IMG/VR virus record: IMGVR_UViG_3300040801_004034
Coordinates: 62,001-126,000 of that record
Direction: 5' to 3' (one strand)
DNA: 64,000 nucleotides
This document shows positions 1 through 62,162 of this stretch, one piece after another. The notes below the pieces were generated by a model. It ran no database searches. It saw nothing but the letters and a program-made list of their open reading frames with translations, and had not been told where the DNA came from. Each line of letters starts with the position of its first letter. Positions within the stretch are counted from its first letter, which is position 1. Made by a program: the position numbers and the translations under genes.

Positions 1-7
1 TATTGTT

Positions 8-823
8 ATGTTTATCGGATTCATTTATATAGTATATTATATAGGTAATAATAGTATAATCAAGGACCACAGTTATATAGGTTCAAGATTATACAACAAA
101 GGTTGGGAGACGTACATGGGATCATCTGTATCAAATAACGAGAAGTGTGTTATTTGGCGAAATGAACTTAAAACCAATCCAGAGAATTTTAAACGTGTGA
201 TTTTAAAAAATGTGACTGATAGTGAGAACATTTACACCGAAGAACATTTAATGATGGAAAAATTTGGTGTTGATTTAAAATCCAATAGTAAGTGGATTAA
301 TAGATCTTTCCCGATATTAAATGGATTATCCGACAATTTCTTAGATGATGATCAGTTACAAGCTATAAAAGAAAAACGTAAACAAACATGCATACAAAAA
401 TATGGTGTTGATCACCCTTCTAAAACAATCATAAATAGAAAAAAATGTAAAGCGCGTTTCAACACTGATGATGTCCGTAAAAGACGAGGTAAAAGTATTT
501 CGAAAGCGTGGAAAAACAAAACAAAAATTGAACTAGAACAAATTACACAAAAACGTACAAAAAAATTACAGAAATATCTCAGTAACCAAAAAAATTATTC
601 AAAACACTGTGAAATGAGAAAACGTACAGCATTAAAATGGTGGGTCACAGTTGAATGTATTGAAACTAATAAAACATTTTCATTTTTTAAAAACGATAGT
701 TTATATCATATACAAGTAGGTCCTGGACAAATAATGAAACGTATAAGGAAAGTCACAATGTCACCTTTTAAAAGTAAAGATGGTATGACATACAGGTTGA
801 TATCATGTATTAAAAAACACTAA
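8..823 (+). CDS. Free-standing GIY-YIG (Seg-like) homing endonuclease
   Basis: N-terminal GFIYIV...YIGS...YMGSS motif; basic C-terminal region with a KRKQTCIQKYGV repeat typical of phage endonuclease DNA-binding tails. Confidence 0.7.
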   Translation: MFIGFIYIVYYIGNNSIIKDHSYIGSRLYNKGWETYMGSSVSNNEKCVIWRNELKTNPENFKRVILKNVTDSENIYTEEHLMMEKFGVDLKSNSKWINRSFPILNGLSDNFLDDDQLQAIKEKRKQTCIQKYGVDHPSKTIINRKKCKARFNTDDVRKRRGKSISKAWKNKTKIELEQITQKRTKKLQKYLSNQKNYSKHCEMRKRTALKWWVTVECIETNKTFSFFKNDSLYHIQVGPGQIMKRIRKVTMSPFKSKDGMTYRLISCIKKH

Positions 824-836
824 ACCAAATCCCATT

Positions 837-1322
837 TTACCAATTATTGATTCTACGTTCTATTTCATATTTCCATGTTTCTTTATCTGTAAAAACAGGA
901 ATATTATATCGTTGACATACGATATCTACGTTGCCTTTACGATAGAAATCATCACAATAAACAACTACCTTATCGTCTTTTGCATGGAGACCAAGCTCTA
1001 ACAAAGATATAGGTGATTGACTTCCGTTTGCAAAATACAGTGCAATAATATCACACTGTTCTAAATGATCTAGCTCCCACTGAACTTGTTCATAAAATTG
1101 TTTTTCGTTCAGACCTTGTTTCCACGATGAATCCCAATCGGATCGACGAGGGTTAAACCACACGCATTTTTTCGATTTAAATTCGTTTGCAAGTTCATCC
1201 TGCCAATCTTCAGCTGCGCCCATATCAATCGACCCTGCTAAAAAAATCCAAGGTCGACTTCGATCATAATGTTTACCCGGGTATATCTCAGGTGGTTTTA
1301 CTATTGTATGCTCTTCACCCAT
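837..1322 (-). CDS. Nucleoside 2-deoxyribosyltransferase-like protein
   Basis: IFLAGSIDMG..DWQ, FNPRR.DW, QVQWEL, SPISLLELGL motifs. Confidence 0.8.
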   Translation of the reverse strand: MGEEHTIVKPPEIYPGKHYDRSRPWIFLAGSIDMGAAEDWQDELANEFKSKKCVWFNPRRSDWDSSWKQGLNEKQFYEQVQWELDHLEQCDIIALYFANGSQSPISLLELGLHAKDDKVVVYCDDFYRKGNVDIVCQRYNIPVFTDKETWKYEIERRINNW

Positions 1323-1323
1323 A

Positions 1324-1845
1324 TTATTTTAATAGTTTGACCGAATCTACTCGGAATTCGATATCTGTCGAACCAAATTCGTTATCTACTTTTGTGCTAT
1401 TAATTTGACCTAACCAGTTAGCAAAAAACGCACAACCATCGCTATTGATATCACTGTTTACAAAGTATGTATTACAATGTTTTTCATGATTATGATCAAA
1501 GTACATATTAAGTAGTACTGCTTGTTTGATGAGTTTTTTAGCATATCCGAACCCTCTGTGGTTCTTACTTGTAGCAATATAATATGTTTTCAATACACCT
1601 AATCCTTTTGTATGTGTTGTAAATGCATGTACTGCTACAATATCTCGTTTTGCTCCTGTCACAGGATTAGGTGTATCATATTCATCATACATAATATGAA
1701 TAGGAAATTCTTCCCACCAGTTACGTGATTCCCATAACCACATGAATGTGTTCATAATGAACCCATCTGTATTATTATACAACCACTCACCTATTTGCAG
1801 TTTTTCTTCATTTGTCGGGCTTAATAGTGCATTTGTTTTTATCAT
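1324..1845 (-). CDS. GNAT-family acetyltransferase
   Basis: Acetyl-CoA binding motif A, YIATSKNHRGFGYAKKLI. Confidence 0.65.
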   Translation of the reverse strand: MIKTNALLSPTNEEKLQIGEWLYNNTDGFIMNTFMWLWESRNWWEEFPIHIMYDEYDTPNPVTGAKRDIVAVHAFTTHTKGLGVLKTYYIATSKNHRGFGYAKKLIKQAVLLNMYFDHNHEKHCNTYFVNSDINSDGCAFFANWLGQINSTKVDNEFGSTDIEFRVDSVKLLK

Positions 1846-1863
1846 AAAAATTTGTTATTGTGT

Positions 1864-2129
1864 TTATTTTTTGTCTGCCCAACGAAAAAACGCTGGTTCC
1901 TGTTCGAGTTCTGATCTCAATTTCTGTTCTTCGTCGCCTTCCAAAGTAGCCCATTTTTCTACTTGAAGTTCTAGTTGACCATCTCTCAACTTATTACGTT
2001 CATTTTCTGCATCAACACGACGTTTAAATTCTTCATAAGTGGCTATTTTTTCGTAGGTTCATAGTCAGAAAGTTTATGATACCACTCTATTGAATTATTT
2101 GATTCTCTATAATGATATGTTCTTTTCAT
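1864..2129 (-). pseudogene. Small gene (~88 aa) broken by a 1-nt frameshift in an A6 run
   Basis: ATG at 2129 reads MKRTYHY...YEPTKK* ; the -1 frame continues IATYEEFKRRVD...FRWADKK* to 1864; one extra A at 2046-2051 would join them. Confidence 0.5.
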
Positions 2130-2155
2130 TATAGGAAATATTAATTTAGGTATGC

Positions 2156-2824
2156 TCATATATTTAAAAATGGTGATCTGTTTTTGAAATTAGCAACTGG
2201 TATAACACCTTCTTTTGTGAATTGATAGATTTTCCCATCTTCAGCTGATATCATATCGTTTTGTTGAATGCTACTAAAGCTATCTTCATCATAGAATAAT
2301 GTACTACCTTGTCTTGCAAGATAAACATTCATTGTTCGTGTATTCACAAGCCATAATGCAAATGTACCGTTTAGTAAACTGATAACGTTCCTGAGAATTT
2401 CATGTTCATTGTTTTCATCATCAATTACACCAAATGTTGCAAGTAAAGCTGGAATTATACTTGTATCGACTTTATTTTCATGTTTCGGTAAATATTCTTT
2501 AACAAGTTTGTTGAAGTTAGTTAAAACACCGTTGTGTGCTACAAACCAATCACCGGATCTGAATGGATGTGTTGTATCATATGACCAATCCCTTTCATTA
2601 CTTGTTGGAGCCTGGTTATGACCGAGATAAAACAGTTCGTTTGAGTCATCCTCTTGTAACCTAACCTTATCCCAAACAAATACACCTTCAGCTTTATGTA
2701 CATTATATGTCCCAGATATACCATTATATCTAAACACACCGCAACTGAAATTACCTCTTTCAGCGTTAATCAAGCCAAGGTCTATAAATTTTTTCTTTGA
2801 AAACGAACCGTACACACCACACAT
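2156..2824 (-). CDS. Class II (Ntn) glutamine amidotransferase
   Basis: N-terminal M-C-G nucleophile, ERG, GHNQAPT, THPF, AHNG and VDT motifs. Confidence 0.85.
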   Translation of the reverse strand: MCGVYGSFSKKKFIDLGLINAERGNFSCGVFRYNGISGTYNVHKAEGVFVWDKVRLQEDDSNELFYLGHNQAPTSNERDWSYDTTHPFRSGDWFVAHNGVLTNFNKLVKEYLPKHENKVDTSIIPALLATFGVIDDENNEHEILRNVISLLNGTFALWLVNTRTMNVYLARQGSTLFYDEDSFSSIQQNDMISAEDGKIYQFTKEGVIPVANFKNRSPFLNI

Positions 2825-2881
2825 TTTAATCTTTCTACTTCAATTATAGTATATAGAATAAAGAAAACAATAAATAATTGT

Positions 2882-4123
2882 ATGAACATTGGTTGGAACA
2901 ACAGAGAAATTATTATTCCAAAGAAGCCTCAGCTTCTTGAAGAGAACACACTTATTGAAGAAAGTATTGCAAAGACACTTAAGCCTGTAATGACAAGACT
3001 TAAGAAAATGAACGTCGGTGTACCGTATCGTGATAGTAGATTGTTTTTCTTCCAATTTCTCAAAGACAAACACCCAGATCTTATTCCGCAAGATTGGCCA
3101 CAAACTCGTAAGCCAGCTGCTAAAGACGTTAATGCTATGGTTGGTCAGATTGCGATAGATAATCCTGATAAGTTAGACAAAATCAGCACTGAATTTGAAA
3201 AGTACGCAAAAGAAGATGTTCAAGGAACAGATGGAGATAGAGTTGCTCAATTCCTCAATACTGCAGCATCACTTAGACACGATAAAGGTGTTAGACCAAA
3301 AGCTGGTGAAGGTTTTGTTAAAAAGGATCTTAGCAAACTTAAAGCAAAAGATATTGCAGCAACAACATACGACGCACCTGTAAAACAGAAAAAAGAAACA
3401 GGTAAGGAAGATGATTACAAGGATATCAAAGATGAGAAGCTTATGCTTCGTGCAGCAATTGGTACAGTTCTTCAAAGAATCCGCGGTGATGGTGAAATCA
3501 ACCCAGAAGCAGTTACAAACGTTGAAGATGCAATTAAAAAGATCGACACAGTTGCAGAAATGGAGCGTTTTATTGCATATCTCAAACCAATGGAAGAGTA
3601 TTGGGAAATTGCAAATTATCTTGAAGATGCTCTTGACCCAATTGAAACAAATCTTGGAGATATGGGTACGGAAAATGAAGAAGGTACACCTGCTAACAAC
3701 TTAGCGGATGAAAGAATTGATCCAAGAGAAGGTCTAGATGAACCCGGTGCAGCTACTGATGAAATTCCAGCTCTTGAATACCTTTTAGATAGTCCAGACT
3801 TTCAACAAGTTAAAAACGGTAGAGATCTATTAGAATTTCCGGAATTGTTTGATGCATTGTTCAGTCACTTTCAACATGAAATGCCATATGGTGTTCAAAA
3901 AGCAAGAGATGGTGACCCTGATCAGTGGATTATGAACAAACTTGAAGAAATGGGTGAACTTAACCATAAACCAAGTGAACAAGAATGTGTTCGTCATAAT
4001 GAATCAGTTAAATTATCACCTCAAGCAGTAAATCAACAGCTTCAAGAAGGTTATCGTCAAAGAATGCAAAACAACCGTGTTGTTGACCAACGTTATGCTG
4101 GTACAGGACGTTACATGAGATAA
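2882..4123 (+). CDS. Hypothetical late protein (possible internal head protein)
   Basis: 413-aa ORF preceded by TAAATA-N5-ATG; acidic, with LxE motifs. Confidence 0.6.
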   Translation: MNIGWNNREIIIPKKPQLLEENTLIEESIAKTLKPVMTRLKKMNVGVPYRDSRLFFFQFLKDKHPDLIPQDWPQTRKPAAKDVNAMVGQIAIDNPDKLDKISTEFEKYAKEDVQGTDGDRVAQFLNTAASLRHDKGVRPKAGEGFVKKDLSKLKAKDIAATTYDAPVKQKKETGKEDDYKDIKDEKLMLRAAIGTVLQRIRGDGEINPEAVTNVEDAIKKIDTVAEMERFIAYLKPMEEYWEIANYLEDALDPIETNLGDMGTENEEGTPANNLADERIDPREGLDEPGAATDEIPALEYLLDSPDFQQVKNGRDLLEFPELFDALFSHFQHEMPYGVQKARDGDPDQWIMNKLEEMGELNHKPSEQECVRHNESVKLSPQAVNQQLQEGYRQRMQNNRVVDQRYAGTGRYMR

Positions 4124-4124
4124 T

Positions 4125-4448
4125 ATGATGTTTTCTAAACTTAGTGAGATGGTGGCAGCTGCTGATTTTGATCATTATAAAGATGTTGACGCAGTGGCTG
4201 AACCAGAGCAGGTCAATGACCAACATGAAGAAGACTTATACAAGTCAATTAAAGTTGATCCTGAAAAATTACTCACATACAATAAAACACAAATTGAACT
4301 ATTAAAAAATATTTTTAGTTCGAAAGGTCTCGCACCTCAGGATGTTGAGTTAGCAATGATGAAAGCACTTAGTAGTGCTATAACACAACGAAGAATACGT
4401 TTACATCTTGCTGCTAATAAGCCTGAGTTATTTGATTACGCTGTGTAA
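4125..4448 (+). CDS. Hypothetical protein
   Basis: 107-aa ORF directly downstream of the previous gene. Confidence 0.55.
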   Translation: MMFSKLSEMVAAADFDHYKDVDAVAEPEQVNDQHEEDLYKSIKVDPEKLLTYNKTQIELLKNIFSSKGLAPQDVELAMMKALSSAITQRRIRLHLAANKPELFDYAV

Positions 4449-5107
4449 TCTTGTTTAGATGTTGCTCTCCATATTAATTTCAACCCTTTATATGGATTAT
4501 TTTTCTTAACCCCACCTTTGAGTTTAATATAAGCCGCTGCGTTGCCGAACACTTTCATGCCATCCTCTGTTGTATCAAACCTATATTGTTTACCTTCATA
4601 TTCAAGTATAAATGGACGTAAACGACTTTTGCGTATTTTTAATTTAACATCATCACGCATGAAAGGATTATCTCTTTTCATCCTTTCAGAACGTGCTTTT
4701 GCAACATCTTTTCTATAATTAGGATTAATTGACTTATCTTTCATCCTTTCACTACATTTTTTCCTACGCTCTTCTGACCATATCTCTTCCTTTTGTTCAG
4801 AACTATATGAAAATTTTGCCCCTGTAGTGTCGAAGCCTTCAGTTGCATATGTAAGATTATAAAACATCGGATCTTCTTTAACACGATATTTCTTCTGCCA
4901 ATAGATTTCTTGTTGCTCAAGTTCCGCAGCAGTTTCACAATCTTGTAGTAATACCCGGGTAAAATTAGATGCACCCAATCTATCGATGTCATCCAATAAG
5001 GCCCATGATGATCCTAAATATGTTTCCCAATTTTTTGAATAAGTCTTACGGCCTATGTATTTTTTACCACTTATATTGTTTGTTGTCAAATAAATAAATC
5101 CTATCAT
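4436..5107 (-). CDS. Free-standing GIY-YIG (Seg-like) homing endonuclease
   Basis: GFIYLTTNNISGKKYIGRK...YLGS...FYNL; late promoter TAAATA at 5113-5118. Confidence 0.8.
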   Translation of the reverse strand: MIGFIYLTTNNISGKKYIGRKTYSKNWETYLGSSWALLDDIDRLGASNFTRVLLQDCETAAELEQQEIYWQKKYRVKEDPMFYNLTYATEGFDTTGAKFSYSSEQKEEIWSEERRKKCSERMKDKSINPNYRKDVAKARSERMKRDNPFMRDDVKLKIRKSRLRPFILEYEGKQYRFDTTEDGMKVFGNAAAYIKLKGGVKKNNPYKGLKLIWRATSKQDYTA

Positions 5108-5140
5108 ACAATTATTTATTGGGATAGGTCAGATGAATTT

Positions 5141-5908
5141 CTATTCTACATCAAATTTATAATCTATATATGGAATTTTTATACAACCGTTTTCTTTATA
5201 CATTTTGTTCAAAGCTTCTTGTTGTTTATATTCTATAGGATCAATATATTTTGCATCTATAAAACCTTTTAATCTTAACGAACTACTTGCTGTTTTAGCA
5301 TCACAAGGTGATGCACCACTATAACATGTAAATGTTTTATCAAATGGTACTTCAAGATTTACACCAAGTTCCATGATTTCTTTCTTCGATAAATCTAATA
5401 GCGGTGCTTCGATTGTAATGCGATGATGTCTATTAAGTTTTGTAATTTCATTTATTGTGTTGACAAAAGGGTAATCGGAATCCCAGTATCCTGCCAAGCT
5501 ATCCACCTGAGCTGCTCCATACCACACAACATCTGCACCGACCGATTCAGCATATGAACAACATACAGTAATAAACAATAGATTTCTAAACGGTACATAT
5601 GTCTTCGGTTGTGCTTCACCAATCACCGTGTCTGTTGTTGGTGTTTCAATATCATTATTGGTTAATGAACTTACATTTGCAAGTCTATTCAATAACATCA
5701 TGTCAATAATCTGATTTGTGATAGTAACATTTGGATATTTTCTACATGCATGTTGAATTAATTTAAGAGCACAACTTATTTCAGTATTATGTCTCTGGTT
5801 GTAATCAAACGTTATAGTATGTACTTCTGAATACTCTTCACAAGCTTTATGAAGTAGAACAGCACTATCTGCTCCACCTGATACTGTTAATACAATTTTT
5901 TTATTCAT
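5141..5908 (-). CDS. queC: 7-cyano-7-deazaguanine synthase QueC
   Basis: SGGADS PP-loop, TITFDYNQRH, YVPFRN, GYWD, APLLDLSKKEI, TFTCY; likely start Met at 5908. Confidence 0.9.
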   Translation of the reverse strand: MNKKIVLTVSGGADSAVLLHKACEEYSEVHTITFDYNQRHNTEISCALKLIQHACRKYPNVTITNQIIDMMLLNRLANVSSLTNNDIETPTTDTVIGEAQPKTYVPFRNLLFITVCCSYAESVGADVVWYGAAQVDSLAGYWDSDYPFVNTINEITKLNRHHRITIEAPLLDLSKKEIMELGVNLEVPFDKTFTCYSGASPCDAKTASSSLRLKGFIDAKYIDPIEYKQQEALNKMYKENGCIKIPYIDYKFDVE

Positions 5909-6155
5909 TTTCATTGTTTTTGATTTGTTCATCAATTGATGCTAAAACTGATTTTAATGTTTCATTATCGTGTGGTAATTGATCAAATACAAATTCAGGT
6001 GTTAATCGAACCTCTTTATTATCATCATTTGTATAAACCAGTTTCGGATGAAGATTTTCATCTATGATTCTTTCTAAAAACGTATACCCTCTTTCACTAA
6101 GATAATATGCTATACACTTTTCATTAATTTTATAATCATCAATCTTCTTGTTCAT
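5901..6155 (-). CDS. Hypothetical protein
   Basis: Short ORF overlapping uvsX and queC in the same operon. Confidence 0.5.
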   Translation of the reverse strand: MNKKIDDYKINEKCIAYYLSERGYTFLERIIDENLHPKLVYTNDDNKEVRLTPEFVFDQLPHDNETLKSVLASIDEQIKNNENE

Positions 6156-7230
6156 CTTCGTCTGGTGTTTCATTATGTTCTTTGCTACCGTATTTCCACT
6201 CTACAGCAATACGTTCTTCAATACGTGGTACAATTCGTTCATCCCACAACTTAGTGTTGTTTTTCCAGGTTCCAAAATATCCTAATTTCTCACCATCAAT
6301 TGTATATGTAGCTCCAGATTGTTCAACTACACCTAATCCTTTTGCTAGTGCAAGAAGACCATAATATTTGTCTAAACCACTAGCAAATGACAGATACATT
6401 TCACCTTCAAGATACTGTTGCACAAAACGATTTTTAACAGTAAGTGCTCGTAAGATAACACCCGGGAAGTTCTTTTGACCTGTTGTAAGTTTACCATCTG
6501 TATTATCTTTACCTTCTTTAATCGGTTTACGAGCTAACTGAACTGTAACCGATGGAAGATATACAACTGCTTTACCACCCGGCATCAATTTCTCAAGTGA
6601 TGGAAACATTGCTGATGGGTCTTCATAAACATGGTTTGTTGCAAGAATGGTTGTCTGTGTAAGACCACTCAACTGCACACATGTTCGTAGAAGCGTCTTC
6701 ATTGCTCTAGCACGGCTACCCATATCTGTACTCGTATTGTCTTTCTCCATACGGTTGATCTGGATTTCACTTTCCATATTACCGAGAGAATCAATTGCAA
6801 TAATGAACTTATCAGTCAAACCTTTTTCTTTGGCCACTGTTAAGAACTTATAAATCGCATTTCGACATTCCTCAATCGAAAAGACCGGTACATACTTGAC
6901 TTTTGAAACATCTAAACCAAGAGCTTCAGCACCTTTTCTATCAATTGCATTTTCACTATCAAAAATAACAACTGTATAACCTTCTTTTTGTGCATTAGCA
7001 AGAATACGTTGAACAATGTATGATTTACCAGCCATTGAAGGACCAGCAAATAGTGTCATACGATTTTTGGGTACACCACCAAAAAGAGAACCGGAAATGA
7101 TGCCGTTAAGCACCATTGATCCGGTATCAAACCACCCACCTGTACTACTCAACGTTTCTTCGTCAAGAAACGAAGAGTAGGGGTTAAGTTTGTCTATCTC
7201 ACCTAAAACAGAAGTTATATCTTTATCCAT
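6139..7230 (-). CDS. uvsX: RecA-like recombinase UvsX
   Basis: DTGSMVLNGIISG, Walker A GPSMAGKS, FDSENA, IDSLG, TNHVY, GG and KNRF motifs. Confidence 0.92.
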   Translation of the reverse strand: MDKDITSVLGEIDKLNPYSSFLDEETLSSTGGWFDTGSMVLNGIISGSLFGGVPKNRMTLFAGPSMAGKSYIVQRILANAQKEGYTVVIFDSENAIDRKGAEALGLDVSKVKYVPVFSIEECRNAIYKFLTVAKEKGLTDKFIIAIDSLGNMESEIQINRMEKDNTSTDMGSRARAMKTLLRTCVQLSGLTQTTILATNHVYEDPSAMFPSLEKLMPGGKAVVYLPSVTVQLARKPIKEGKDNTDGKLTTGQKNFPGVILRALTVKNRFVQQYLEGEMYLSFASGLDKYYGLLALAKGLGVVEQSGATYTIDGEKLGYFGTWKNNTKLWDERIVPRIEERIAVEWKYGSKEHNETPDEDEQED

Positions 7231-7237
7231 GTATTAA

Positions 7238-7585
7238 TTATAACACATGATCGGTATCTTTCAATACCTCTACAATCTTTTTAGAAAGATAATTGTTCTT
7301 ATCTTTGTTCTCATCCAAGAACTCACGCCATGTTTGAATAACACTGCGGATCTTTTGGAGCTCTGGATTTGCAACAGGTCCGAGACCTTTATCAGCTCCA
7401 GCAATTGCGTTTTTCAATACATTGATAGCACCTTCAACACCTGCTGCTTGACCACGAGCAAAGGCCGGGTGCTGTCTTGGCGTATCGTCTGTTTCAGGGT
7501 TGTCTAGATATGATCCATGTTTAATATTTGAAAACTTATAGTCATCATTCGGATCAACTTTTGCTTCTTGATATAATTTACTCAT
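7238..7585 (-). CDS. Hypothetical protein
   Basis: 115-aa ORF in the replication operon. Confidence 0.55.
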   Translation of the reverse strand: MSKLYQEAKVDPNDDYKFSNIKHGSYLDNPETDDTPRQHPAFARGQAAGVEGAINVLKNAIAGADKGLGPVANPELQKIRSVIQTWREFLDENKDKNNYLSKKIVEVLKDTDHVL

Positions 7586-7946
7586 CGAACAAATTGATTA
7601 CCTTGTCATCACCTTGTGCGGGTACATTTTCAACAAGCTTGGGACGAACGATACGTTGATATTGCTCACCGATGCGAGCATCGATGTCAAAGCCTTTACT
7701 CATTGTGATTTGATCATTCTTATAAACGAATGTTACATCACGGTTACCATCTGCATCCGGCTCAACAAACTCACCGAAAAATAAAGGAAATAGCTGAACA
7801 GCCATTTGACCTTGTTGCTGCTGTTGAACGTTAATCATAACCGGATTGGTTACAGCTAGCTCACCAGACTGTTGTTCATCCGCCTTTTCGGCGAAAATTG
7901 TGCGACCTGTTTGGTCAAGGAACATTACGTATTTATTTTCTTCCAT
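7578..7946 (-). CDS. Hypothetical protein
   Basis: 122-aa ORF with TTGACT-N16-TAAAAT upstream. Confidence 0.6.
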   Translation of the reverse strand: MEENKYVMFLDQTGRTIFAEKADEQQSGELAVTNPVMINVQQQQQGQMAVQLFPLFFGEFVEPDADGNRDVTFVYKNDQITMSKGFDIDARIGEQYQRIVRPKLVENVPAQGDDKVINLFDE

Positions 7947-7975
7947 ATCTTATTTTATAAACATTAAACTCGAAG

Positions 7976-10570
7976 TCAACCTAGCAACTCAAGTAATGAT
8001 GTTTTAGTTTGGTTATCTGGTTTCTGAATAGGCCAATGAACTGTTTCATAAAAACGTCGTATACACTGAAACAGAACCTTTTCAAACATTATATTATAAT
8101 CGATTTCAATATTATCTTTAAACTCTTTCGGGTAGTCATATTTGAACCCTAAACAATCAATATTGTACCTATTTGGTTTTTGAACATAGAATGTTCTAAC
8201 TTTATCACCTGATTGAATTTTTTCATAATTAGATGCGATATCAAACCTATCAAGTAACAAGTTATGATAGTATGCAGCTTTTGCATGCATCGGCATACCT
8301 TTACATGTCTTAAACCCATCACACTGTTCGATATATTTTTCAAATTGATGAATACCTGAAATCGAAGCAATATCTTTCACATCCATTGCAATCACATCAT
8401 CATATGCTTTCGATAGAACACGATTAGTCTGCTGTATGCTTTGCGTTCTAAGCATTGTTTCAATGATATCCTTTGCATATGGTTTGATTTTAACTGGCAT
8501 TGTTGATCTTACAACTTCAACACCTTTGTATTTGAATTTATCACATGCAATACCTTCATCATCAAGAATACGGAGTACATAACGTTTCTTACCTGTAAAT
8601 ACACCAACACTTGCAATAACTTCACGCTTAAACACAAATGAGCAATTCTTAGAGTTTAGAGCTTTTGCTCCCCATTTTTTAATACCTACATTCAAGTAAT
8701 CTTCAACCTTTTGAATAGCGTCATAACCATCTTGCGTCACATACTGCTTGTTATCTTTTTCATCAATAACTTTAATACCTTGATGGTCAGTTAAAGCTTT
8801 AATCGATGCATATGTACTGTCTGTATCATTATATATTACAGATTTTTCAAGTGCTAATTCATCTACATCAGGTACTTGTTCTTTGATGTAATCTTTTATT
8901 AATTGATTAGCTTGTTTGATAACACCTTGACCTGTTAATGTAATCGACATACCAATATCTCTATCTCCCATTGGTGCATAACTATTTGCAAAGTATCCAT
9001 AGATTGAGTTAATGAAAATCTTAATACACAACTGTTTTGCATCTAGTTGTTCAATTTTATGTTTTACTTTACGTATTTCATCTTTATCAGCACCGGACTT
9101 TTCCATTTCGGCTTTTTTAACACGAAGTTTTTGCATCTCTTTCTTTACAACAACCCGTTTATCGTAATTGTACTGCAAAATCTTTGGCATAAGACCGAGA
9201 TTCTTTTGTGAAAACATAATATTCGCTTTACTGATTCCGACTTCATGTTTTTTAACAAATTTAACGAAATTCTCCGGCGTAAGTTCATGAACTGTCCCGT
9301 TTATGAGTTGTATTTTGATACATTCATCAGTTTTGCTCAATATCTTACCTAGTTTTGTTTCTGGAGACATATTAAGTGAAATCATCACGTTCGGATACAA
9401 ACTATTCGCATCAAAACTGATTACATTTTCATGAAAACCATCTTGAGGTTCACCTACATATGCTCCTGGAATTCTACCTTGTTCATTTCGTTTGAATGTT
9501 GGTATAATTTGACCTTGACGTCTAGCTTGAATTGCAGCACTACCATTAATAACGGAAATTGCACCAAGAGATTGTTCAAATGTGGTTAACCCAGTGTATG
9601 CTAACATTCGAGCCAATCCGAAATAGTTTAATTTCTCTTCTAGGTTGACAAGAAGTCTAACGTCCTGAATGTTGTATTCAACGAACTTTTGCCAGTTAGT
9701 ACGAGCTAACTCACCAATTGAAATATCACCATAATCGATTTTCTTCTGACCTAACTCGAGTTCGCCGATCGTATCAAGTTTGTAGTTTTCTTTTTCTCCA
9801 GGACTGAACTGTTTATAGACTTCAAGGTAGTCAAGTACCGATACACCTCGAATAGTCCATTTTTTAATAGCCATACCCGCATCGGTAATAATATCCCTGC
9901 ATGATATGTCTCTTGATGGAGATAAACGTTCCATCCATTTACGACCTACTATCTTATCCCCTCTAGCAATAAGGTATGGTAAGTCGAAACCATGTAAATT
10001 CCATGCACTTATGATATCAGGGTAGTCCTTCTCAAAATATAATATAAATCGTTGAAATAACTGTTCTTCATTATCACACTGAACATATTTTACATCAGGG
10101 TCGTTATTTTTATATGGTCCAATACCGAATACAGTATGAATGTTTGTAAGTGAATCATGTAGTGTAACAACATTAACAACTTGTTGCGGATCATGTATAT
10201 TTGGGAAACCTGTATCATCTACCTGTGTTTCAATATCGAGAAAAACACATTTGATAGGATGAATTGAGAAATCTTCATCTTCATTATGTTTCCAATATTC
10301 ATCTACTAAAAACTGCTGTACTGGTGGTAAATTCTCAAAGAACCGATTCGTTGATACATCATTTGTATATTTGTACCGTTCATAAGCAGTTCCAAAAGAT
10401 TTTTTGCGTAGTCCAGTTTTAAAAATAGATTGACCTTCACCATCACTATGCTCGATATAAAGATATGGTGAGTAGTGGTGTCTTACAACTGTTCTCTCAC
10501 CATTTTCATCCCATGTATGTACATATACACTTCTTCCTTTGGGATCATAATAAGCATTTCTATAACTCAT
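7976..10570 (-). CDS. gp43: Family B DNA polymerase (gp43-like)
   Basis: ExoI DIET, ExoII WNLHGFDLPY, YNIQD; Pol motifs FDANSLYP, KIFINSIYG, YNDTDS, KKRY. Confidence 0.97.
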   Translation of the reverse strand: MSYRNAYYDPKGRSVYVHTWDENGERTVVRHHYSPYLYIEHSDGEGQSIFKTGLRKKSFGTAYERYKYTNDVSTNRFFENLPPVQQFLVDEYWKHNEDEDFSIHPIKCVFLDIETQVDDTGFPNIHDPQQVVNVVTLHDSLTNIHTVFGIGPYKNNDPDVKYVQCDNEEQLFQRFILYFEKDYPDIISAWNLHGFDLPYLIARGDKIVGRKWMERLSPSRDISCRDIITDAGMAIKKWTIRGVSVLDYLEVYKQFSPGEKENYKLDTIGELELGQKKIDYGDISIGELARTNWQKFVEYNIQDVRLLVNLEEKLNYFGLARMLAYTGLTTFEQSLGAISVINGSAAIQARRQGQIIPTFKRNEQGRIPGAYVGEPQDGFHENVISFDANSLYPNVMISLNMSPETKLGKILSKTDECIKIQLINGTVHELTPENFVKFVKKHEVGISKANIMFSQKNLGLMPKILQYNYDKRVVVKKEMQKLRVKKAEMEKSGADKDEIRKVKHKIEQLDAKQLCIKIFINSIYGYFANSYAPMGDRDIGMSITLTGQGVIKQANQLIKDYIKEQVPDVDELALEKSVIYNDTDSTYASIKALTDHQGIKVIDEKDNKQYVTQDGYDAIQKVEDYLNVGIKKWGAKALNSKNCSFVFKREVIASVGVFTGKKRYVLRILDDEGIACDKFKYKGVEVVRSTMPVKIKPYAKDIIETMLRTQSIQQTNRVLSKAYDDVIAMDVKDIASISGIHQFEKYIEQCDGFKTCKGMPMHAKAAYYHNLLLDRFDIASNYEKIQSGDKVRTFYVQKPNRYNIDCLGFKYDYPKEFKDNIEIDYNIMFEKVLFQCIRRFYETVHWPIQKPDNQTKTSLLELLG

Positions 10571-32358: not shown

Positions 32359-32983
32359 AGTAGTACATATTTTATGGTGGGACATTACTGAAAAACCAGA
32401 CTTCTTCGATGAAAATATCAGTTCATGGACTGAACATAACCCTGAATGGACTGTTAAAGTATGGGGTAGACAGGAATGCTATTCATTGTTAAAAGTATTC
32501 TACCCTAGATACTTCTGTATGTTCGAAGAATATGAACATGATATTCAAAGAATTGATGCAATAAGATATTTTATACTTCATTTAGATGGTGGGTTATATG
32601 CTGATATCGATATCAAGTGTAATAAATGTATTGATAATATTATCGATAATGAGGATGTTTTATTTAAAGAAGGAAAGAATCAAACAAAGTTATTCCCGAA
32701 TCTTACAAACATTACAAATAGTATAATGTATAGTACAGGTAAGAGTGTTTTTTTCAATTACATAATTAAAATGCTGTTTTTAACTAAACAGAAAGATGAA
32801 CAGAATGATGTGTTAAATGTATTATACTCAACTGGACCTGGTTTAGTAACTGCCGCTCATGATTTATTCAATACAAGACATGTTACAGTTCACCCAAGTA
32901 CATTTTTCGATGAACCACCTTGTATATATGGACAGCATTTGTATATGAATTCATGGTTTAATAAAGAGAATGTTATTATATGA
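32351..32983 (+). CDS. GT32 (OCH1-like) glycosyltransferase
   Basis: SW...NPEW, QRIDAIRYFILHLDGGLYADIDI, TGPG, H....SW; GTG start at 32351. Confidence 0.88.
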   Translation: MNKVVHILWWDITEKPDFFDENISSWTEHNPEWTVKVWGRQECYSLLKVFYPRYFCMFEEYEHDIQRIDAIRYFILHLDGGLYADIDIKCNKCIDNIIDNEDVLFKEGKNQTKLFPNLTNITNSIMYSTGKSVFFNYIIKMLFLTKQKDEQNDVLNVLYSTGPGLVTAAHDLFNTRHVTVHPSTFFDEPPCIYGQHLYMNSWFNKENVII

Positions 32984-33972
32984 TTTTAACTAAAAGACAA
33001 ATAGATGCAATGGTAAATACTATACCAAATACATTTGATAATATTCTTCATGAATCTAGTATACTGGTCGATAAGAGTAAGTTTGATATCAGCACTATTG
33101 ATGATCATGGTGATATAATAACTATTGATACGATCAGTAAATGTAACTTACACTGTTCATTTTGTAGAGGTAGTATATCTAATATAGGTGAACTTTCAAA
33201 ATTACAAACAATGACTCAAACTGCATTTGAAATATTTGTAAAAAGAGCAACTGATTATGGTATTAAGCATATTGAAATGACACCTGCTATAGGAGAGCCG
33301 TTTATTGATAAGGGTATTATCGATAAGCTTAAACATCTTGAAGAGAATGATAAAATAGAGAGTTACATCATAACAACAAACCTCACTATGTGGAAGGATG
33401 TACATTTTGAATTCATAAAAACATGTAACAAGATTGTATTTAATATTTCACTTTATGGATATGATGAAGAATCATACAGCAAATCAACAAACCGTAAAAA
33501 CAAGTTTCAAACGTTCTATGCAAATTTTACACGTTTAGCAGATATCGTTCATGAGTATGACAATGTATATATGATTATTTTCATGAGATGCGGATTACCA
33601 TTTAATCACAGGTTTCCGAGAACTCCTATTTTTTACGATGTATTCAATTTAGCAAACCTTAAAAACTGTTGGTTAAATAACGGTGATATTGAAAATATCA
33701 ATCGTGCTGCAAATCTTGAAGGGTTTGAAAAGAAGTCACGTCAACGTTCTGGTATATGTCCGAATGGCCCTGGAATCGGCGGTGGTGTAATAGCGAATGG
33801 TGATTTTCTCTTCTGTCCATTCAATGATATCAACAGAGTTGGTGTTGTCGGTAATTTATATACCCAGTCGTTAGAAGAAATATACAGTGGTGATAAATGG
33901 CAAGAAATTTTAAATAATCATATGAATAATACATATATCGGTATTTGTAAAAACTGTGATGAGACGTGGTAG
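32980..33972 (+). CDS. Radical SAM / SPASM-twitch protein
   Basis: CNLHCSFC, GEP, TTN; C-terminal C..NGDFLFC..VGNL..C..C. Confidence 0.9.
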   Translation: MILTKRQIDAMVNTIPNTFDNILHESSILVDKSKFDISTIDDHGDIITIDTISKCNLHCSFCRGSISNIGELSKLQTMTQTAFEIFVKRATDYGIKHIEMTPAIGEPFIDKGIIDKLKHLEENDKIESYIITTNLTMWKDVHFEFIKTCNKIVFNISLYGYDEESYSKSTNRKNKFQTFYANFTRLADIVHEYDNVYMIIFMRCGLPFNHRFPRTPIFYDVFNLANLKNCWLNNGDIENINRAANLEGFEKKSRQRSGICPNGPGIGGGVIANGDFLFCPFNDINRVGVVGNLYTQSLEEIYSGDKWQEILNNHMNNTYIGICKNCDETW

Positions 33973-38188: not shown

Positions 38189-38947
38189 ATGATCGATACA
38201 GCTAAAGAAACATTGTTTATGAGTGATGACAAGGTATTTTACACTTGTGAAGGGGAAGGTGAATATGTCGGTAAGCCATCAGTATTCTTTAGAGTATCGA
38301 TGTGTAATTTAACTTGCAAAAATTTCGCATCAGAAGATTCACCACATGGGTGTGATTCATACATTTCATGGAGTGTTAAAAATAAAATGACATTTGATGA
38401 AATCTTTGAATATATGGAAGAAAGACGCTATATTGAATTTCTTAGAAACGGAGCATTACTTAAATTAACAGGCGGTGAGCCATTAGTAAGTCAAAAGAAA
38501 TTACTCAAGTTCATCGAAGCATTTATAGAGAGATATGAGTTTTATCCTAGAATCGATTTTGAAACGAATGCTACCATTATGCCAGACAAAAGATGGGTAG
38601 AAGAATTTGGTGCAACATTTACAACATCACCTAAGCTTTCTACGAATGGTGATCCGGAGAGTAAAACATACAAACCTGATGTGCTTAAATGGCACGTTGA
38701 AAATAATAGTGGTTTCAAATTCGTTATTACTTGTTCAGAAGATATTGAAGAAATTTGGAGAAAGTATGTCGATGAGCGTAATGATATTAATGTTCCGCTA
38801 GATCGTGTATGGTTCATGCCTTGTTGTGGTTCACGCAGTGAGCATATAGAGAACGCACCTGCTGTAGCAGAATATGCTAAAGCGTGTGGTGTTAATTTCA
38901 GTCCTAGAATGCATTTATTAATCTGGGACTTAGCTTTACGAGTTTAA
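38189..38947 (+). CDS. queE: 7-carboxy-7-deazaguanine synthase QueE
   Basis: FYT.EGEG...G.PSVF.R..CNL.C...CDS, TGGEP, ETN, SPK, SPR.H. Confidence 0.92.
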   Translation: MIDTAKETLFMSDDKVFYTCEGEGEYVGKPSVFFRVSMCNLTCKNFASEDSPHGCDSYISWSVKNKMTFDEIFEYMEERRYIEFLRNGALLKLTGGEPLVSQKKLLKFIEAFIERYEFYPRIDFETNATIMPDKRWVEEFGATFTTSPKLSTNGDPESKTYKPDVLKWHVENNSGFKFVITCSEDIEEIWRKYVDERNDINVPLDRVWFMPCCGSRSEHIENAPAVAEYAKACGVNFSPRMHLLIWDLALRV

Positions 38948-41465: not shown

Positions 41466-42284
41466 ATGAGATTAAGTATCAGCGGAACAGCAAGCATCGG
41501 AAAGTCAACATTAATAGGTGATATGCTTGCTACATGGCCAGCATTCGAACACACAAAAGTGTCATATAGAGATATTCTTACGAATCAAAATTTACCACAT
41601 AGTAAAGAGTCAACAAAAGAGACACAATGGGCTATTTTGAATCATATGGTTGATCAGATGCAAGGGTACACACCACAAGATAAAGTAATCTTTGATAGAT
41701 GCCCTCTTGATAATTTAGTTTATAGCATGTGGTTATTTGATAAAGGTCTTGGTGGTGTCGACGAGAAGTTTATTGATAAGTGTCTTCCTATTGTATCTGA
41801 AAGTATGAAATCACTTGATATCATATTTTTCATTCCTATGACAAAATTCAATAAAATGAATATTGTAGATAACGGTACAAGAGAAACAGATCCGGTTTAC
41901 ATTTCTGAAATTGATCAAATATTCAAAGGTCTCCAAGCTCAGTACCAACAGCACCCGCAAGAAAATCCTTTCTTTCCGCGAGATGATTCACCAGCTCTTA
42001 TAGAGATTTTCGGATCAAGAAAAGAACGTATTCAAATGATAAAACTTTATCTTGATGATGATGGTGATGTTATTGGTGGGGAAAATGGAGCTAATGAAGT
42101 TTTCTCTCCGGAAAATATCAGTTTAGTTGAAGATCTTTTAAAGGAGCAACAAAAACTAAATGATAGTGAAAAAGCTTATACCGCTGAAATGGACAAAATT
42201 AAGGACTTTGTTAGACATAACAAAGGTGTAGATGTCGGTGTTGATATCAGAAAGCTTTCAAAAGATAAATATGATCTTTATTAA
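41466..42284 (+). CDS. P-loop nucleotide/nucleoside kinase-like protein
   Basis: ISGTASIGKST and IFDRCPLDNLVY motifs. Confidence 0.75.
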   Translation: MRLSISGTASIGKSTLIGDMLATWPAFEHTKVSYRDILTNQNLPHSKESTKETQWAILNHMVDQMQGYTPQDKVIFDRCPLDNLVYSMWLFDKGLGGVDEKFIDKCLPIVSESMKSLDIIFFIPMTKFNKMNIVDNGTRETDPVYISEIDQIFKGLQAQYQQHPQENPFFPRDDSPALIEIFGSRKERIQMIKLYLDDDGDVIGGENGANEVFSPENISLVEDLLKEQQKLNDSEKAYTAEMDKIKDFVRHNKGVDVGVDIRKLSKDKYDLY

Positions 42285-42592
42285 GCGTTTGCTATGGTGG
42301 TTACAGTACCACTTGAACCTTTATATTTAAAAGCACCGTTCTGTACATAAAATGTACCACCATTTACTGGTGTATCAGGTTCGGATGTATTTTTAACTGT
42401 AATAGCAGTATCAAATGTACCAGAACCTATATCAGCTATAGCTGATCCAAAAGTGGTGTTATCCAAATCAATGACAAAATTACTGAATGGTATTTTAAAT
42501 GTACCGCCTTGTGTTTCTACAATCAGATAATCACTAGGATTTATTTCGGATGCTTCTGGTAATGTTTTAATTGATTTTGAATTGCCTGCCAT
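42281..42592 (-). CDS. Late protein, possibly virion structural
   Basis: TAAATA-N5-ATG; IKTLPEA...DYLIVET and fibre-like C-terminus GAFKYKGSSGTVTTIA. Confidence 0.55.
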   Translation of the reverse strand: MAGNSKSIKTLPEASEINPSDYLIVETQGGTFKIPFSNFVIDLDNTTFGSAIADIGSGTFDTAITVKNTSEPDTPVNGGTFYVQNGAFKYKGSSGTVTTIANA

Positions 42593-42638
42593 ACAATTAT
42601 TTATTGGATTCTCAGAATTAACAACATATAATCATGTT

Positions 42639-43238
42639 ATGTGGAAAATAGCTAAACAATTCGATTTCTGTTACGGTCATCGCGTATGGAATCAAACTCT
42701 CAATACTGACTTTTCGATTGACGGTCGTTGTGTATGTCGTCACCTTCATGGTCACCAAGGAACAGTTAAAGTGTTTCTTGAAGGTGATGAATTAACAGCT
42801 GGTATGGTAACAGATTTTAAGCACCTTAACTGGTTAAAGAAATTTCTTGATGATGTTTTAGATCATAAGTTCATTATTGATAAGAATGATCCGATGATTG
42901 ATGCTATTATACCATTCAATTGTATTGATGGTGTTGAAAAACGAGAGAACGGTTGGGTATTTGATGGACAACTTAATATAACTACATTATGTTTTACAAA
43001 ACATTTTATACACAACACAGGTTATTCGACGATTAATACAAATCTAATTGCAAAACAAACACCTGATATGCAAGATATTCTTGAAGGGTTCGTTATCGTG
43101 GATTTTATACCAACATCAGAAAATCTCTCTAAATGGATTTGTGATATTGCTAATGCAAAGATGAATAAGATTGGTGTGAAAGTAAGTAGGGTTCAATTCT
43201 TTGAAACTCCTAAATCACAAGCAAACTATTATGTGTAA
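42639..43238 (+). CDS. queD: 6-carboxytetrahydropterin synthase QueD
   Basis: F.FCYGHR, C.HLHGH, GMVTDF, LDHKF, PTSEN and ETP motifs. Confidence 0.92.
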   Translation: MWKIAKQFDFCYGHRVWNQTLNTDFSIDGRCVCRHLHGHQGTVKVFLEGDELTAGMVTDFKHLNWLKKFLDDVLDHKFIIDKNDPMIDAIIPFNCIDGVEKRENGWVFDGQLNITTLCFTKHFIHNTGYSTINTNLIAKQTPDMQDILEGFVIVDFIPTSENLSKWICDIANAKMNKIGVKVSRVQFFETPKSQANYYV

Positions 43239-58788: not shown

Positions 58789-59337
58789 ATGATCAAATAT
58801 AAAAGTGATATTTTCGGTGCAACGGTTTATCCAGATGAAAAAATAATTGCGTTTTGGGGAGGAATCTTAAGTCAATGGGCACCATGTATGTTTACATGTG
58901 AAAAATATCTGCCTGGTATTGAATTAAATTCTGCTGAACAAGGTATGATGCTTTTAAAAGCAAAAGAGTTCAATGACACTGAAATATTTGATGCAATATT
59001 GAAATCGAACGATCCAAGAGAACAAAAAGCTCTTGGTCGTAAAGTATCTGGGTTTGTACCAGAACAGTGGGATAAGGTTTGTGTAGATTATGTAACAGCT
59101 ATTAACATTGATAAGTTTGAACAAAACTATGCATGGAAAGAAGCTTTGAAACTTGTGCCAGATTTTACATTCGTTGAAGCATCGCCTTATGATCGCGTTT
59201 GGGGCGTTGGTTTAGGTGAAGATAATCCCGATGTAGTTGATCCATCTAAATGGGATGGTAAAAATTATCTTGGTATTGCTATCATGAGAGCTCGTGATGC
59301 TATCATTGAAAGATCTGCAATTAATAATCATGAATAG
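58789..59337 (+). CDS. NADAR (YbiA-like) family protein
   Basis: LSQW, SAEQ.MM.KA..F.D, KALGRKV, VEASPYDRVWGVG, G.N.LG. Confidence 0.92.
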   Translation: MIKYKSDIFGATVYPDEKIIAFWGGILSQWAPCMFTCEKYLPGIELNSAEQGMMLLKAKEFNDTEIFDAILKSNDPREQKALGRKVSGFVPEQWDKVCVDYVTAINIDKFEQNYAWKEALKLVPDFTFVEASPYDRVWGVGLGEDNPDVVDPSKWDGKNYLGIAIMRARDAIIERSAINNHE

Positions 59338-61649: not shown

Positions 61650-62162
61650 ATGAAAAAGGTTATTTATTACCAAGGTATTCGAAGAGAAGGTGCATGGGAC
61701 AGCACTGAGCACTTTAACTCTAAAGTTGACGGGCTTGAAAAGGCCGGTTATGTTGTAGAGCGTGTACCATCTTGCAGAGATTATGATCTATCTCTTAGAA
61801 AGTTTCTAGACATTACACCAACTACAGATGTCGAAATGATTGTTGGTTGTTCTCTTGGTGGTTTTTGGGCAAATAAACTTGCATGCAAATATAACATTCC
61901 TGTTTTGCTGATTAACCCGCAATTGCTACCGCTTTATTATACCATGGATGAGCGCGCAATTGATACAAAACAAATCGAACGTACATTCTTTCTTGCAAAA
62001 GATGATGATATTCTAGATTATAGACTCACACAACATTTTATTGAAACCAACAGTATCAATGGTGATGTGCGTGTTTTTGATTATGGTCAACACCATTTTG
62101 GTTCTGAGAAATGTGTTAATGAAATTGTTGAGTACATAAATAACTATGTACCATGCGATTAA
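61650..62162 (+). CDS. YqiA/YcfP-like alpha/beta hydrolase
   Basis: GCSLGGFWA nucleophile elbow, LINP, DD.LD, HHF. Confidence 0.85.
   Translation: MKKVIYYQGIRREGAWDSTEHFNSKVDGLEKAGYVVERVPSCRDYDLSLRKFLDITPTTDVEMIVGCSLGGFWANKLACKYNIPVLLINPQLLPLYYTMDERAIDTKQIERTFFLAKDDDILDYRLTQHFIETNSINGDVRVFDYGQHHFGSEKCVNEIVEYINNYVPCD

Follow-up and report, generated by a model that had tools for sequence, protein, structure and literature searches.

A predicted GNAT-family gene alternates with dpdN, the gene of a predicted formyltransferase, in a 7-deazaguanine operon of uncultured T4-like phages

Known routes to 7-deazaguanines in phage DNA

Eight 7-deazaguanine derivatives are known in phage DNA (PMC10516641), and each new one came from spotting an unexplained gene in a que/dpdA cluster. 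Two of the described routes are of particular relevance here. In phage 9g, a fused Gat-QueC protein, in which a class II amidotransferase domain precedes QueC in a single polypeptide, gives dG+ (PMC6884629), and a Gat-QueC fusion is also found in Crenarchaeota. In DpdA3 systems such as that of the fdPreQ1 phage immuto, the published view is one of post-replicative exchange by DpdA3, with replacement of all G, and the formyl group is attributed to DpdN, itself only a predicted formyltransferase (PMC10516641). A third group, the KVP40-like Schizotequatrovirus phages, use DpdA2 and DpdM, and modify under 1% of G.

We examined a window of 64,000 nucleotides (positions 62,001 to 126,000 of IMG/VR record IMGVR_UViG_3300040801_004034) from the complete 221-kb genome of an uncultured T4-like phage. 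The original prediction for this window was that a block of four same-strand genes, encoding a class II glutamine amidotransferase (GATase), a small frameshifted ORF, a GNAT and a nucleoside 2-deoxyribosyltransferase (NDT)-like protein, forms a candidate tailoring module for a new 7-deazaguanine derivative downstream of queC. We confirm that all four features are present (Table 1), with the GATase start lying 2317 nt downstream of the QueC stop. However, our results indicate that they are not one module.

Table 1. Features of the analysed window and the rest of the genome (window positions unless marked as genome positions).
Feature	Position	Strand	Size	Basis of assignment
MazZ-like dATP/dGTP diphosphohydrolase gene, start only	1-5 (gene at genome 61661-62005, about 340 nt beyond the left end)	-		tblastn and phmmer E about 1e-34 to the 112-aa PF18909 protein that follows GNAT or DpdN in relatives
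Seg-like GIY-YIG homing-endonuclease-like ORF	8-823	+	271 aa	N-terminus 33% identical to the SegE-like endonuclease at 4436-5107 (E 3e-9)
NDT-like protein	837-1322	-	161 aa	PF15891, 111 bits against a cut-off of 30, E 3e-32; PDB 4mcj, E 3.8e-24
GNAT, proposed preQ1/dPreQ1 N-acyltransferase	1324-1845	-	173 aa	PF00583, 22.4 bits against a cut-off of 20.7
Orphan small reading frame in two pieces	1864-2159 (ORF A 2043-2159)	-		Translations; ORF B in the -1 frame
Class II (Ntn) GATase, proposed partner of QueC	2156-2824	-	222 aa	PF13522 (GATase_6), 38.4 bits against a cut-off of 27; GATase_7
Two ORFs of unknown function	2882-4123 and 4125-4448	+	413 aa and 107 aa	No family hits
SegE-like GIY-YIG homing endonuclease	4436-5107	-		PF19835, phrog_314
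QueC	5141-5935	-	264 aa	PF06508, E 6.5e-50; TIGR00364, 158 bits against a cut-off of 150.3
QueE-like radical-SAM enzyme (candidate)	38189-38947	+		phmmer E 1e-6 to immuto QueE and 5e-10 to pf16 QueE; Fer4_12
P-loop kinase (AAA_28), more distant relative of tmkL	41466-42284	+		PF13521, E 1.4e-8; phmmer E 1.7e-7 to the immuto thymidylate-kinase-like protein
QueD (PTPS family)	42582-43238	+		PF01242, E 2e-27
DpdA3	genome 147360-148256			E 6e-72 to immuto DpdA3

The amidotransferase and its pairing with QueC

The GATase begins Met-Cys-Gly, and residues C2, R23, R78, H86, N98-G99 and D120 are invariant across 15 relatives. Profile matches to the glutaminase domains of GlmS and PurF align N98-G99 and D120 with the HNG motif and the Asp of the GFAT1/PurF domains, where N98-G99 probably forms the oxyanion hole and R78 and D120 probably bind glutamine. 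A stand-alone class II amidotransferase of this kind lies directly beside QueC in at least six phage lineages: KVP40 and 48 related records, pf16, Vibrio phage 2.275.O, and three sets of loci from our survey (here given L numbers), namely L123-125, the L148 type and L215. Furthermore, every partnered QueC has Y[W/H]Dx where 11 unpartnered QueCs keep YPDC. Thus the original prediction that the stand-alone GATase partners QueC is supported, although the GATase is not universal among phage QueCs, and it could instead act as an Ntn amidohydrolase or make an amidine. Structure prediction of the QueC-GATase complex from paired 15-row alignments gave no verdict (score 0.27 against a mark of 0.32), which is evidence neither for nor against binding.

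The QueC of this phage retains the SGGxDS, YxQxHxxE and VPxRN motifs of the canonical enzyme (PMC13329287) as SGGADS, YNQRHNTE and VPFRN. However, YWDS replaces YPDC, and two of the four cysteines of the C(x)8CxxCxxC zinc site are replaced by Thr and Ser, such that preQ0 might come partly from the host. QueCs in DpdA3/DpdN clusters resembling that of immuto lack all four Cys, so the loss need not inactivate the enzyme. In this clade QueC and the GATase are separated by two opposite-strand ORFs, which have homologues at the same place in many relatives, but upstream of QueC in L124. The 413-aa ORF has no match in the phage collection searched, no Pfam, PHROG or NCBIfam hit and a poor, uninformative structural model, and we found no support for it being a hidden DpdA or FolE. 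The SegE-like endonuclease just downstream of QueC is found at this place in only one relative, L103.

The remainder of the genome argues indirectly against G+ as the product. It encodes DpdA3 and a bimodular QueF (E 2e-76 to that of immuto) with the cluster kinase, tmkL, between them, as well as QueD, a QueE-like protein, a PRT and the MazZ-like gene. Neither the Pfam TGT model nor Vibrio or pf16 DpdA2 queries detect a DpdA here, the former as reported for DpdA3 (PMC10516641), but the immuto DpdA3 query does. A second radical-SAM hit, at 32980-33972, carries a SPASM domain and was rejected as QueE. No FolE was found in the complete genome, using PF01227 and two phage FolEs as queries. In addition, phi-Grn1 and phi-ST2, which carry the same unfused QueC-GATase pair, hold dPreQ1/mdPreQ1 and no dG+ (PMC10516641, Table 1). 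The case for a split Gat-QueC that makes G+ rests on the class II domain shared with the phage 9g fusion (27% identity over 101 aa), and on the NDT-like protein discussed below. Given the evidence against it, we regard this model, in which the GNAT acylates G+ and the NDT-like enzyme with a kinase loads or cleanses the base in place of DpdA, as very unlikely.

Alternation of the GNAT with DpdN

The Pfam score of the GNAT is marginal, but the fold is confirmed by an AF2 model (pLDDT 85.3) for which Foldseek returns SpeG amine N-acetyltransferases as the best PDB matches (probability 1.0 and TM 0.6-0.66 to SpeG and other GNATs). The acyl-CoA pyrophosphate-binding motif R/Q-x-x-G-x-G/A is present as R-G-F-G-Y-A, and R/K-G-x-G-x-A/G is conserved in 15 relatives. 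A word search recovered only the protein itself and a single-sequence locus scan found nothing, and an alignment was needed. The GNAT follows the GATase in about 33 related contigs, with a 4-nt overlap in the relatives where both ORFs were delimited.

In 11 loci of the same clade this slot holds instead a protein with PF00551 and 42% identity (E 2e-44) to immuto DpdN. On the GATase tree the two states are interspersed, with at least 4-5 forced changes and sister pairs with near-identical GATases, and blastn shows 93-94% identity up to the GATase stop and from the MazZ start, with nothing in between. Two complete GNAT-type genomes have DpdA3-tmkL-QueF and no PF00551, while the positive control found PF00551 in 4 of 4 DpdN-type contigs. 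The genome studied here has no PF00551 anywhere and no DUF3109/DpdM. It is important to note that many of the related contigs are fragments from similar marine samples, so the counts of loci overstate the number of independent observations.

There are two possible explanations for this alternation. The first is that the GNAT does the job that DpdN does in sister phages. The second is that the GNAT, and possibly the GATase, are unrelated accessory genes in a hyperplastic stretch between uvsX and the gp41 helicase, with the GNAT acetylating a host protein, a polyamine or an antibiotic, and its alternation with DpdN reflecting only a shared insertion hot spot. In favour of the latter, the best structural matches are polyamine and protein acetyltransferases, the same stretch holds homing endonucleases, sugar-nucleotide enzymes and other variable genes, this phage took up three extra ORFs after the GATase, and L065 and L123-125 have nothing in the slot. 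A swap alone could therefore be chance. An exhaustive profile search for the GNAT family finds only 48 clusters. Of seven contexts looked up, three were too short or uninformative, and all four informative ones are deazaguanine clusters: DpdA3-GNAT-tmkL-QueF; DpdA3-tmkL-GNAT-QueF; GATase-QueC-QueE-DpdA3-GNAT-tmkL; and, in L210, a tmkL::GNAT fusion next to QueF-QueD-PRT-dUTPase-FolE. The 309-aa protein after QueF in L210 is not recognisably DpdA3 (E 2e-3). These contexts outside the clade answer the hot-spot objection, but they are few. Together with the lack of DpdN and DpdM in GNAT-type genomes and the QueC-GATase adjacency and motif covariation across six lineages, they lead us to consider the accessory-gene explanation unlikely.

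The remaining two members of the block are insertions specific to this phage. The small reading frame has a start that overlaps the GATase stop and is broken by a -1 shift at an A6 run near 2045. The break is identical in contigs of four runs of the source sample, although, being one sample, those runs are not independent. In relatives the GNAT start lies directly at the GATase stop, and ORF B has no counterpart in the related loci. The NDT-like gene is absent from all 57 related loci, while of 58 loci carrying such genes one has QueC within 10 kb, and only 2 of 40 NDT-bearing viral records have QueC anywhere. It does retain the conserved Glu of the superfamily (E109, invariant in 37 sequences), and its AF2 model (pLDDT 91.5) matches 4mcj, then MilB, NDTs and DNPH1. 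However, it lies beside the Seg-like ORF, which is absent at this place in relatives, and the two form the insertion between the GNAT and the MazZ-like gene, the conserved next gene of the operon. Since DpdA3 is encoded, nothing needs to replace it. Thus the predicted role of the NDT-like gene in bypassing DpdA is not supported. A promoter and terminator scan of 1-6200 gave fewer sites than the shuffled controls, and a nucleotide search of 1-8000 against isolated phages gave only an 85-nt chance-level match.

A proposed pathway and its comparison with known systems

Our preferred explanation, held with moderate confidence in the absence of biochemistry for any step, is that the GATase and the GNAT are conserved members of a DpdA3-type, preQ1-based DNA modification pathway. 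In this model QueD, QueE and QueC make preQ0, with the GATase inferred to hydrolyse glutamine and hand ammonia to QueC; QueF, by homology to tested phage QueFs, is inferred to reduce preQ0 to preQ1; and DpdA3, again by homology, is inferred to put the base into DNA. From the gene swaps, fusion and neighbourhood we infer that the GNAT uses an acyl-CoA, most simply acetyl-CoA, to acylate the 7-aminomethyl group of preQ1. The predicted product is 7-(acetylamino)methyl-7-deazaguanine in DNA (acetyl-dPreQ1), with a predicted mass of dPreQ1 [M+H]+ 296.1 plus 42.0, about 338.1; this product is not described in the literature we consulted.

The fusion to a nucleotide-kinase-like protein hints at a nucleoside or nucleotide substrate. 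This raises the alternative that the GNAT works on a preQ1 nucleoside or nucleotide made by the cluster's phosphoribosyltransferase and P-loop kinase, with the modified dNTP used during replication and DpdA3 having a lesser or different role. Consistent with this, tmkL accompanies DpdN in 66 of 80 DpdN loci, PRT and a dNTP hydrolase (MazZ, MazG or dUTPase-like) recur in many of them, and DpdA3 systems replace all G. Given the published view of post-replicative exchange and the conservation of DpdA3 here, we consider this alternative unlikely.

More tentatively, it is possible that a widespread, uncultured T4-like phage lineage from marine and microbial-mat samples replaces guanine with acetyl-dPreQ1 made by a dedicated GNAT family, that near-identical phages switch between this base and formyl-dPreQ1 by exchanging a single-gene cassette, and that the same clusters reveal a glutamine-dependent two-subunit QueC. 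Such exchange would be a modular way to diversify DNA chemistry against restriction, and to do so quickly. New modified bases and their enzymes are also useful for restriction- and CRISPR-resistant DNA.

Compared with the closest described DpdA3 system, DpdA3, the tmk-like kinase and the bimodular QueF lie in the same order, at 46-65% identity, and QueD, QueE, QueC, PRT and an NTP pyrophosphohydrolase are present. The differences are that a non-homologous GNAT takes the place of DpdN, that QueC has a stand-alone GATase partner and a changed YPDC motif, that no FolE was found, and that the genes are spread over three regions of a T4-like genome. The Gat-QueC fusion likewise combines a class II Ntn amidotransferase with a QueC-family PP-loop enzyme, but here they are two genes, usually in the order QueC then GATase, and QueF is present. 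The unfused pair KVP40.0124/KVP40.0125 (QueC plus a 'PF00310' hypothetical protein) also lies inside a deazaguanine cluster with QueF, but identity is only 29-33% and there is no GNAT after the GATase. This GATase is present even in KVP40, nt-1, VH7D and pf16, yet it is not listed among pathway proteins in PMC6884629 (Supplementary Data 1) or PMC8056088. In asparagine synthetase B and the split GMP synthetase of archaea (the latter cited in PMC13329287), a glutaminase supplies ammonia to a PP-loop ATP pyrophosphatase that amidates an adenylated carboxylate; here the synthetase is QueC, the substrate is CDG, and the coupling is inferred. Finally, the NDT-like protein is 36% identical to PDB 4mcj (putative nucleoside deoxyribosyltransferase BDI_0649), with a TM of 0.8 and the conserved Glu in the LLELG motif. 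The function of the whole PF15891 family is unknown, and in phages its recurrent neighbours are NAMPT, a PRPP-synthase-like protein, NUDIX and NADAR, not que genes.

The locus and the remaining pathway genes

The virus record is a 221,292-bp IMG/VR entry that CheckV rates complete, and it is a T4-like genome with UvsX, a gp43-type polymerase, a gp41-type helicase and a T4 portal. The nearest isolate UvsX, from cyanophages, is only about 32% identical, so the lineage is uncultured. Features of the locus and of the wider genome are listed in the table. Reading downstream from uvsX on the minus strand, QueC is followed by a homing endonuclease, two opposite-strand ORFs, the amidotransferase, a small broken frame, the GNAT, the deoxyribosyltransferase-like (NDT-like) gene, a further endonuclease-like ORF and, just beyond the left edge of the window, a MazZ-like dATP/dGTP diphosphohydrolase. 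The original prediction's observation of an amidotransferase, a small frameshifted ORF, a GNAT and an NDT-like gene downstream of queC is therefore confirmed.

Features of the locus, of the wider genome and of related loci (window coordinates, bases 62001-126000 of the record, unless marked genome or with a locus handle)
Feature	Coordinates	Strand	Remarks
QueC	5141-5935	-	
SegE-like homing endonuclease (GIY-YIG)	4436-5107	-	
Two ORFs without family hits	2882-4448	+	413 aa and 107 aa
Class II amidotransferase (GATase)	2156-2824	-	
Small ORF	1864-2159	-	broken at an A6 run
GNAT	1324-1845	-	
PF15891 deoxyribosyltransferase-like protein	837-1322	-	
Seg-like GIY-YIG endonuclease ORF	8-823	+	N-terminus resembles the Seg endonuclease
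MazZ-like dATP/dGTP diphosphohydrolase		-	just beyond the left edge of the window
Radical-SAM protein with a SPASM domain	32980-33972	+	not QueE
QueE-like radical-SAM protein	38189-38947		
QueD	42582-43238		
NADAR-domain protein	58789-59337	+	E 1e-38
gp41-type helicase	genome 59696-61030	-	weak Intein_splicing hit at the C-terminus, E 7e-4
Sugar-nucleotide genes	genome 60997-61755; L115 11531-13409; L148 7675-8628; L089 9741-10835		
DpdA3	genome 147360-148256		outside the window
DpdA3 cluster	genome 147360-149725		outside the window
Thg1-like tRNA-His guanylyltransferase homologue	genome 174490-175326	-	outside the window; E 4e-27
DpdA3 of contig L215	L215 3474-4295		called as two ORFs (113 + 137 aa)

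In addition to QueC, QueD and the QueE-like protein, the genome encodes DpdA3, a P-loop kinase that we call tmkL, a bimodular QueF and a phosphoribosyltransferase (PRT). DpdA3 and QueF match those of Flavobacterium phage immuto_2-6A, in whose DNA all G is replaced by formyl-dPreQ1 (PMC10516641), at E 6e-72 and 2e-76. No DpdN and no DpdM/DUF3109 were found. Nor was a GTP cyclohydrolase I (FolE) detected, although most of the longer DpdA3/DpdN loci examined encode one, and the phage may depend on the host for the first step. A DpdA therefore exists and the expected base is of the preQ1 type, which already argues against the proposals that the product is G+ and that DpdA needs to be bypassed.

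The stand-alone amidotransferase and QueC

The amidotransferase keeps the Ntn nucleophile Cys2, the Asn-Gly oxyanion hole and the glutamine-binding Arg and Asp. In 57 related loci the order is UvsX-QueC-(opposite-strand ORFs)-GATase, while in the more distant relatives L123-125 the GATase follows QueC directly. The opposite-strand ORFs, for which we obtained no family or fold assignment, lie between QueC and the GATase in many relatives, but upstream of QueC in L124. The same unfused pair, end to end, occurs in all 49 Vibrio phage records that hold it, nearly all KVP40-like (KVP40.0124/0125), including nt-1, VH7D, phi-Grn1 and phi-ST2. It also occurs in Pseudomonas phage pf16, in Vibrio jumbo phage 2.275.O and in a DpdA3/DpdN lineage (the L148 type), while in the short contig L215 the order is GATase then QueC. 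All of these except the L215 fragment carry QueF beside the pair, the present lineage carrying it elsewhere in the genome.

Every partnered QueC has Y[W/H]Dx in place of the YPDC substrate-pocket motif, whereas eleven unpartnered phage QueCs keep YPDC. This may partly reflect shared descent, but it marks the pair as a unit. Separately, the zinc site is eroded, with 2 of 4 Cys lost in the QueC studied here and all 4 being Ser in QueCs of DpdA3/DpdN-type clusters. Notably, phi-Grn1 and phi-ST2 contain dPreQ1 and mdPreQ1 and no dG+, and VH7D QueF is a proven preQ0 reductase (PMC10516641). For these reasons, and in the absence of biochemical data, we read the GATase as the glutamine-hydrolysing ammonia donor of QueC. 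QueC is a PP-loop amidating enzyme known to use ammonia (PMC13329287), which gives a split asparagine-synthetase-like design. The protein is not listed in the pathway tables that we examined.

Alternation of the GNAT with DpdN

In about 33 loci of the clade the GNAT follows the GATase, with a 4-nt start/stop overlap wherever both ORFs could be delimited, and is itself followed by the MazZ-like gene. In one locus of the clade, L115, that slot instead holds a 177-aa PurN-like protein (PF00551, TIGR00639) that is 42% identical over its full length to immuto DpdN (E 2e-44), and ten further loci of the clade have the same arrangement. Many of the related contigs are fragments from similar samples, and the slot after the GATase also accepts unrelated insertions. 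On a maximum-likelihood tree of the GATase the two states are interspersed, with at least 4-5 changes forced by well-supported branches and some sister pairs having almost identical GATases. At the DNA level, L092 (GNAT) and L115 (DpdN) are 93% identical up to the GATase stop and 94% identical from the MazZ start, yet share nothing in between, and the loci L131 and L093 show the same pattern. Both complete GNAT-type genomes, this one and a 209-kb record with terminal repeats, have DpdA3-tmkL-QueF and no formyltransferase, while the same search finds DpdN in 4 of 4 DpdN-type contigs. In several relatives, sugar-nucleotide genes (GDP-mannose 4,6-dehydratase, epimerases, a cytidylyltransferase-like protein and a Glyco_tranf_2_5 protein) sit right after the deazaguanine operon, and these may bear on further DNA or surface glycosylation.

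Independent confirmation came from an exhaustive search, in which a profile of the GNAT found only 48 clusters among 1.84 billion representatives. All four contexts long enough to read are deazaguanine clusters: DpdA3-GNAT-tmkL-QueF (L217), DpdA3-tmkL-GNAT-QueF (L218), GATase-QueC-QueE-DpdA3-GNAT-tmkL (L215) and, in a phage with a PolIII-alpha replication module (L210), a single protein that fuses tmkL (33% identity, E 6e-35) to the GNAT (27%, E 3e-11), directly before QueF-QueD-PRT-dUTPase-FolE. In L215 DpdA3 is called as two ORFs, although tblastn aligns it contiguously, and this may be a frameshift or an assembly error. None of the four has DpdN, whereas in most other lineages DpdN lies exactly between DpdA3 and tmkL (66 of 80 loci).

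The predicted structure of the GNAT is confident and resembles amine N-acetyltransferases such as SpeG, and the acyl-CoA motif is conserved. The simplest chemistry is N-acetylation of the 7-aminomethyl group, giving acetyl-dPreQ1, although this inference is not biochemical and the activity of DpdN itself is only predicted. We found no paper that combines dPreQ1 or preQ1 with an acetyltransferase in this sense. An alternative possibility concerns the level at which the pathway acts. DpdA3 clusters almost always include, between DpdN and QueF, the P-loop kinase (AAA_28/NadR-like, annotated thymidylate kinase), and often also a phosphoribosyltransferase and a dNTP hydrolase (MazZ-, MazG- or dUTPase/DCD-like). 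Together with the kinase fusion, this leaves room for nucleotide-level steps in a pathway thought to be post-replicative.

Inserted genes and comparison with known systems

The NDT-like protein, to which the original prediction had given a possible role in loading or cleansing the base, is a solid member of PF15891, close to the uncharacterised structure 4mcj and more distantly like MilB, NDTs and DNPH1. It is missing from every related locus, and sits between the GNAT and the MazZ-like gene together with the Seg-like endonuclease ORF. Of 58 viral loci that carry a homologue, one has QueC within 10 kb, and of 40 whole records, two have QueC. Its recurrent neighbours in other phages are NAMPT, a PRPP-synthase-like protein, NUDIX and NADAR, and a NADAR-domain protein is also encoded in this window, which suggests a link of the family to NAD or ADP-ribose metabolism and points to NAD or nucleotide salvage, if anywhere.

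The small broken ORF is also unique to this phage. Its start codon overlaps the GATase stop, as that of the GNAT does in relatives, and the frame then breaks at G-AAA-AAA-TAG, where a -1 shift would give a protein of about 97 aa. The break is identical in all four assemblies of the source, which are four runs of one microbial-mat sample. It could be a pseudogene, two mini-ORFs or a programmed shift, and its second part, ORF B, has no homologue in the related loci. The two related Seg-like GIY-YIG endonuclease genes bracket the operon and are absent from nearly all relatives, so the locus has recently been invaded by homing endonucleases.

Our conclusion is that the original prediction is partly right, in that its pairing of the GATase with QueC and its view of the GNAT as a tailoring enzyme hold, while G+ and a role for the NDT-like gene do not. 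Phage 7-deazaguanine systems are already known; in this new variant the GNAT is inferred to stand in for DpdN, which gives a concrete and testable prediction of a new DNA base.
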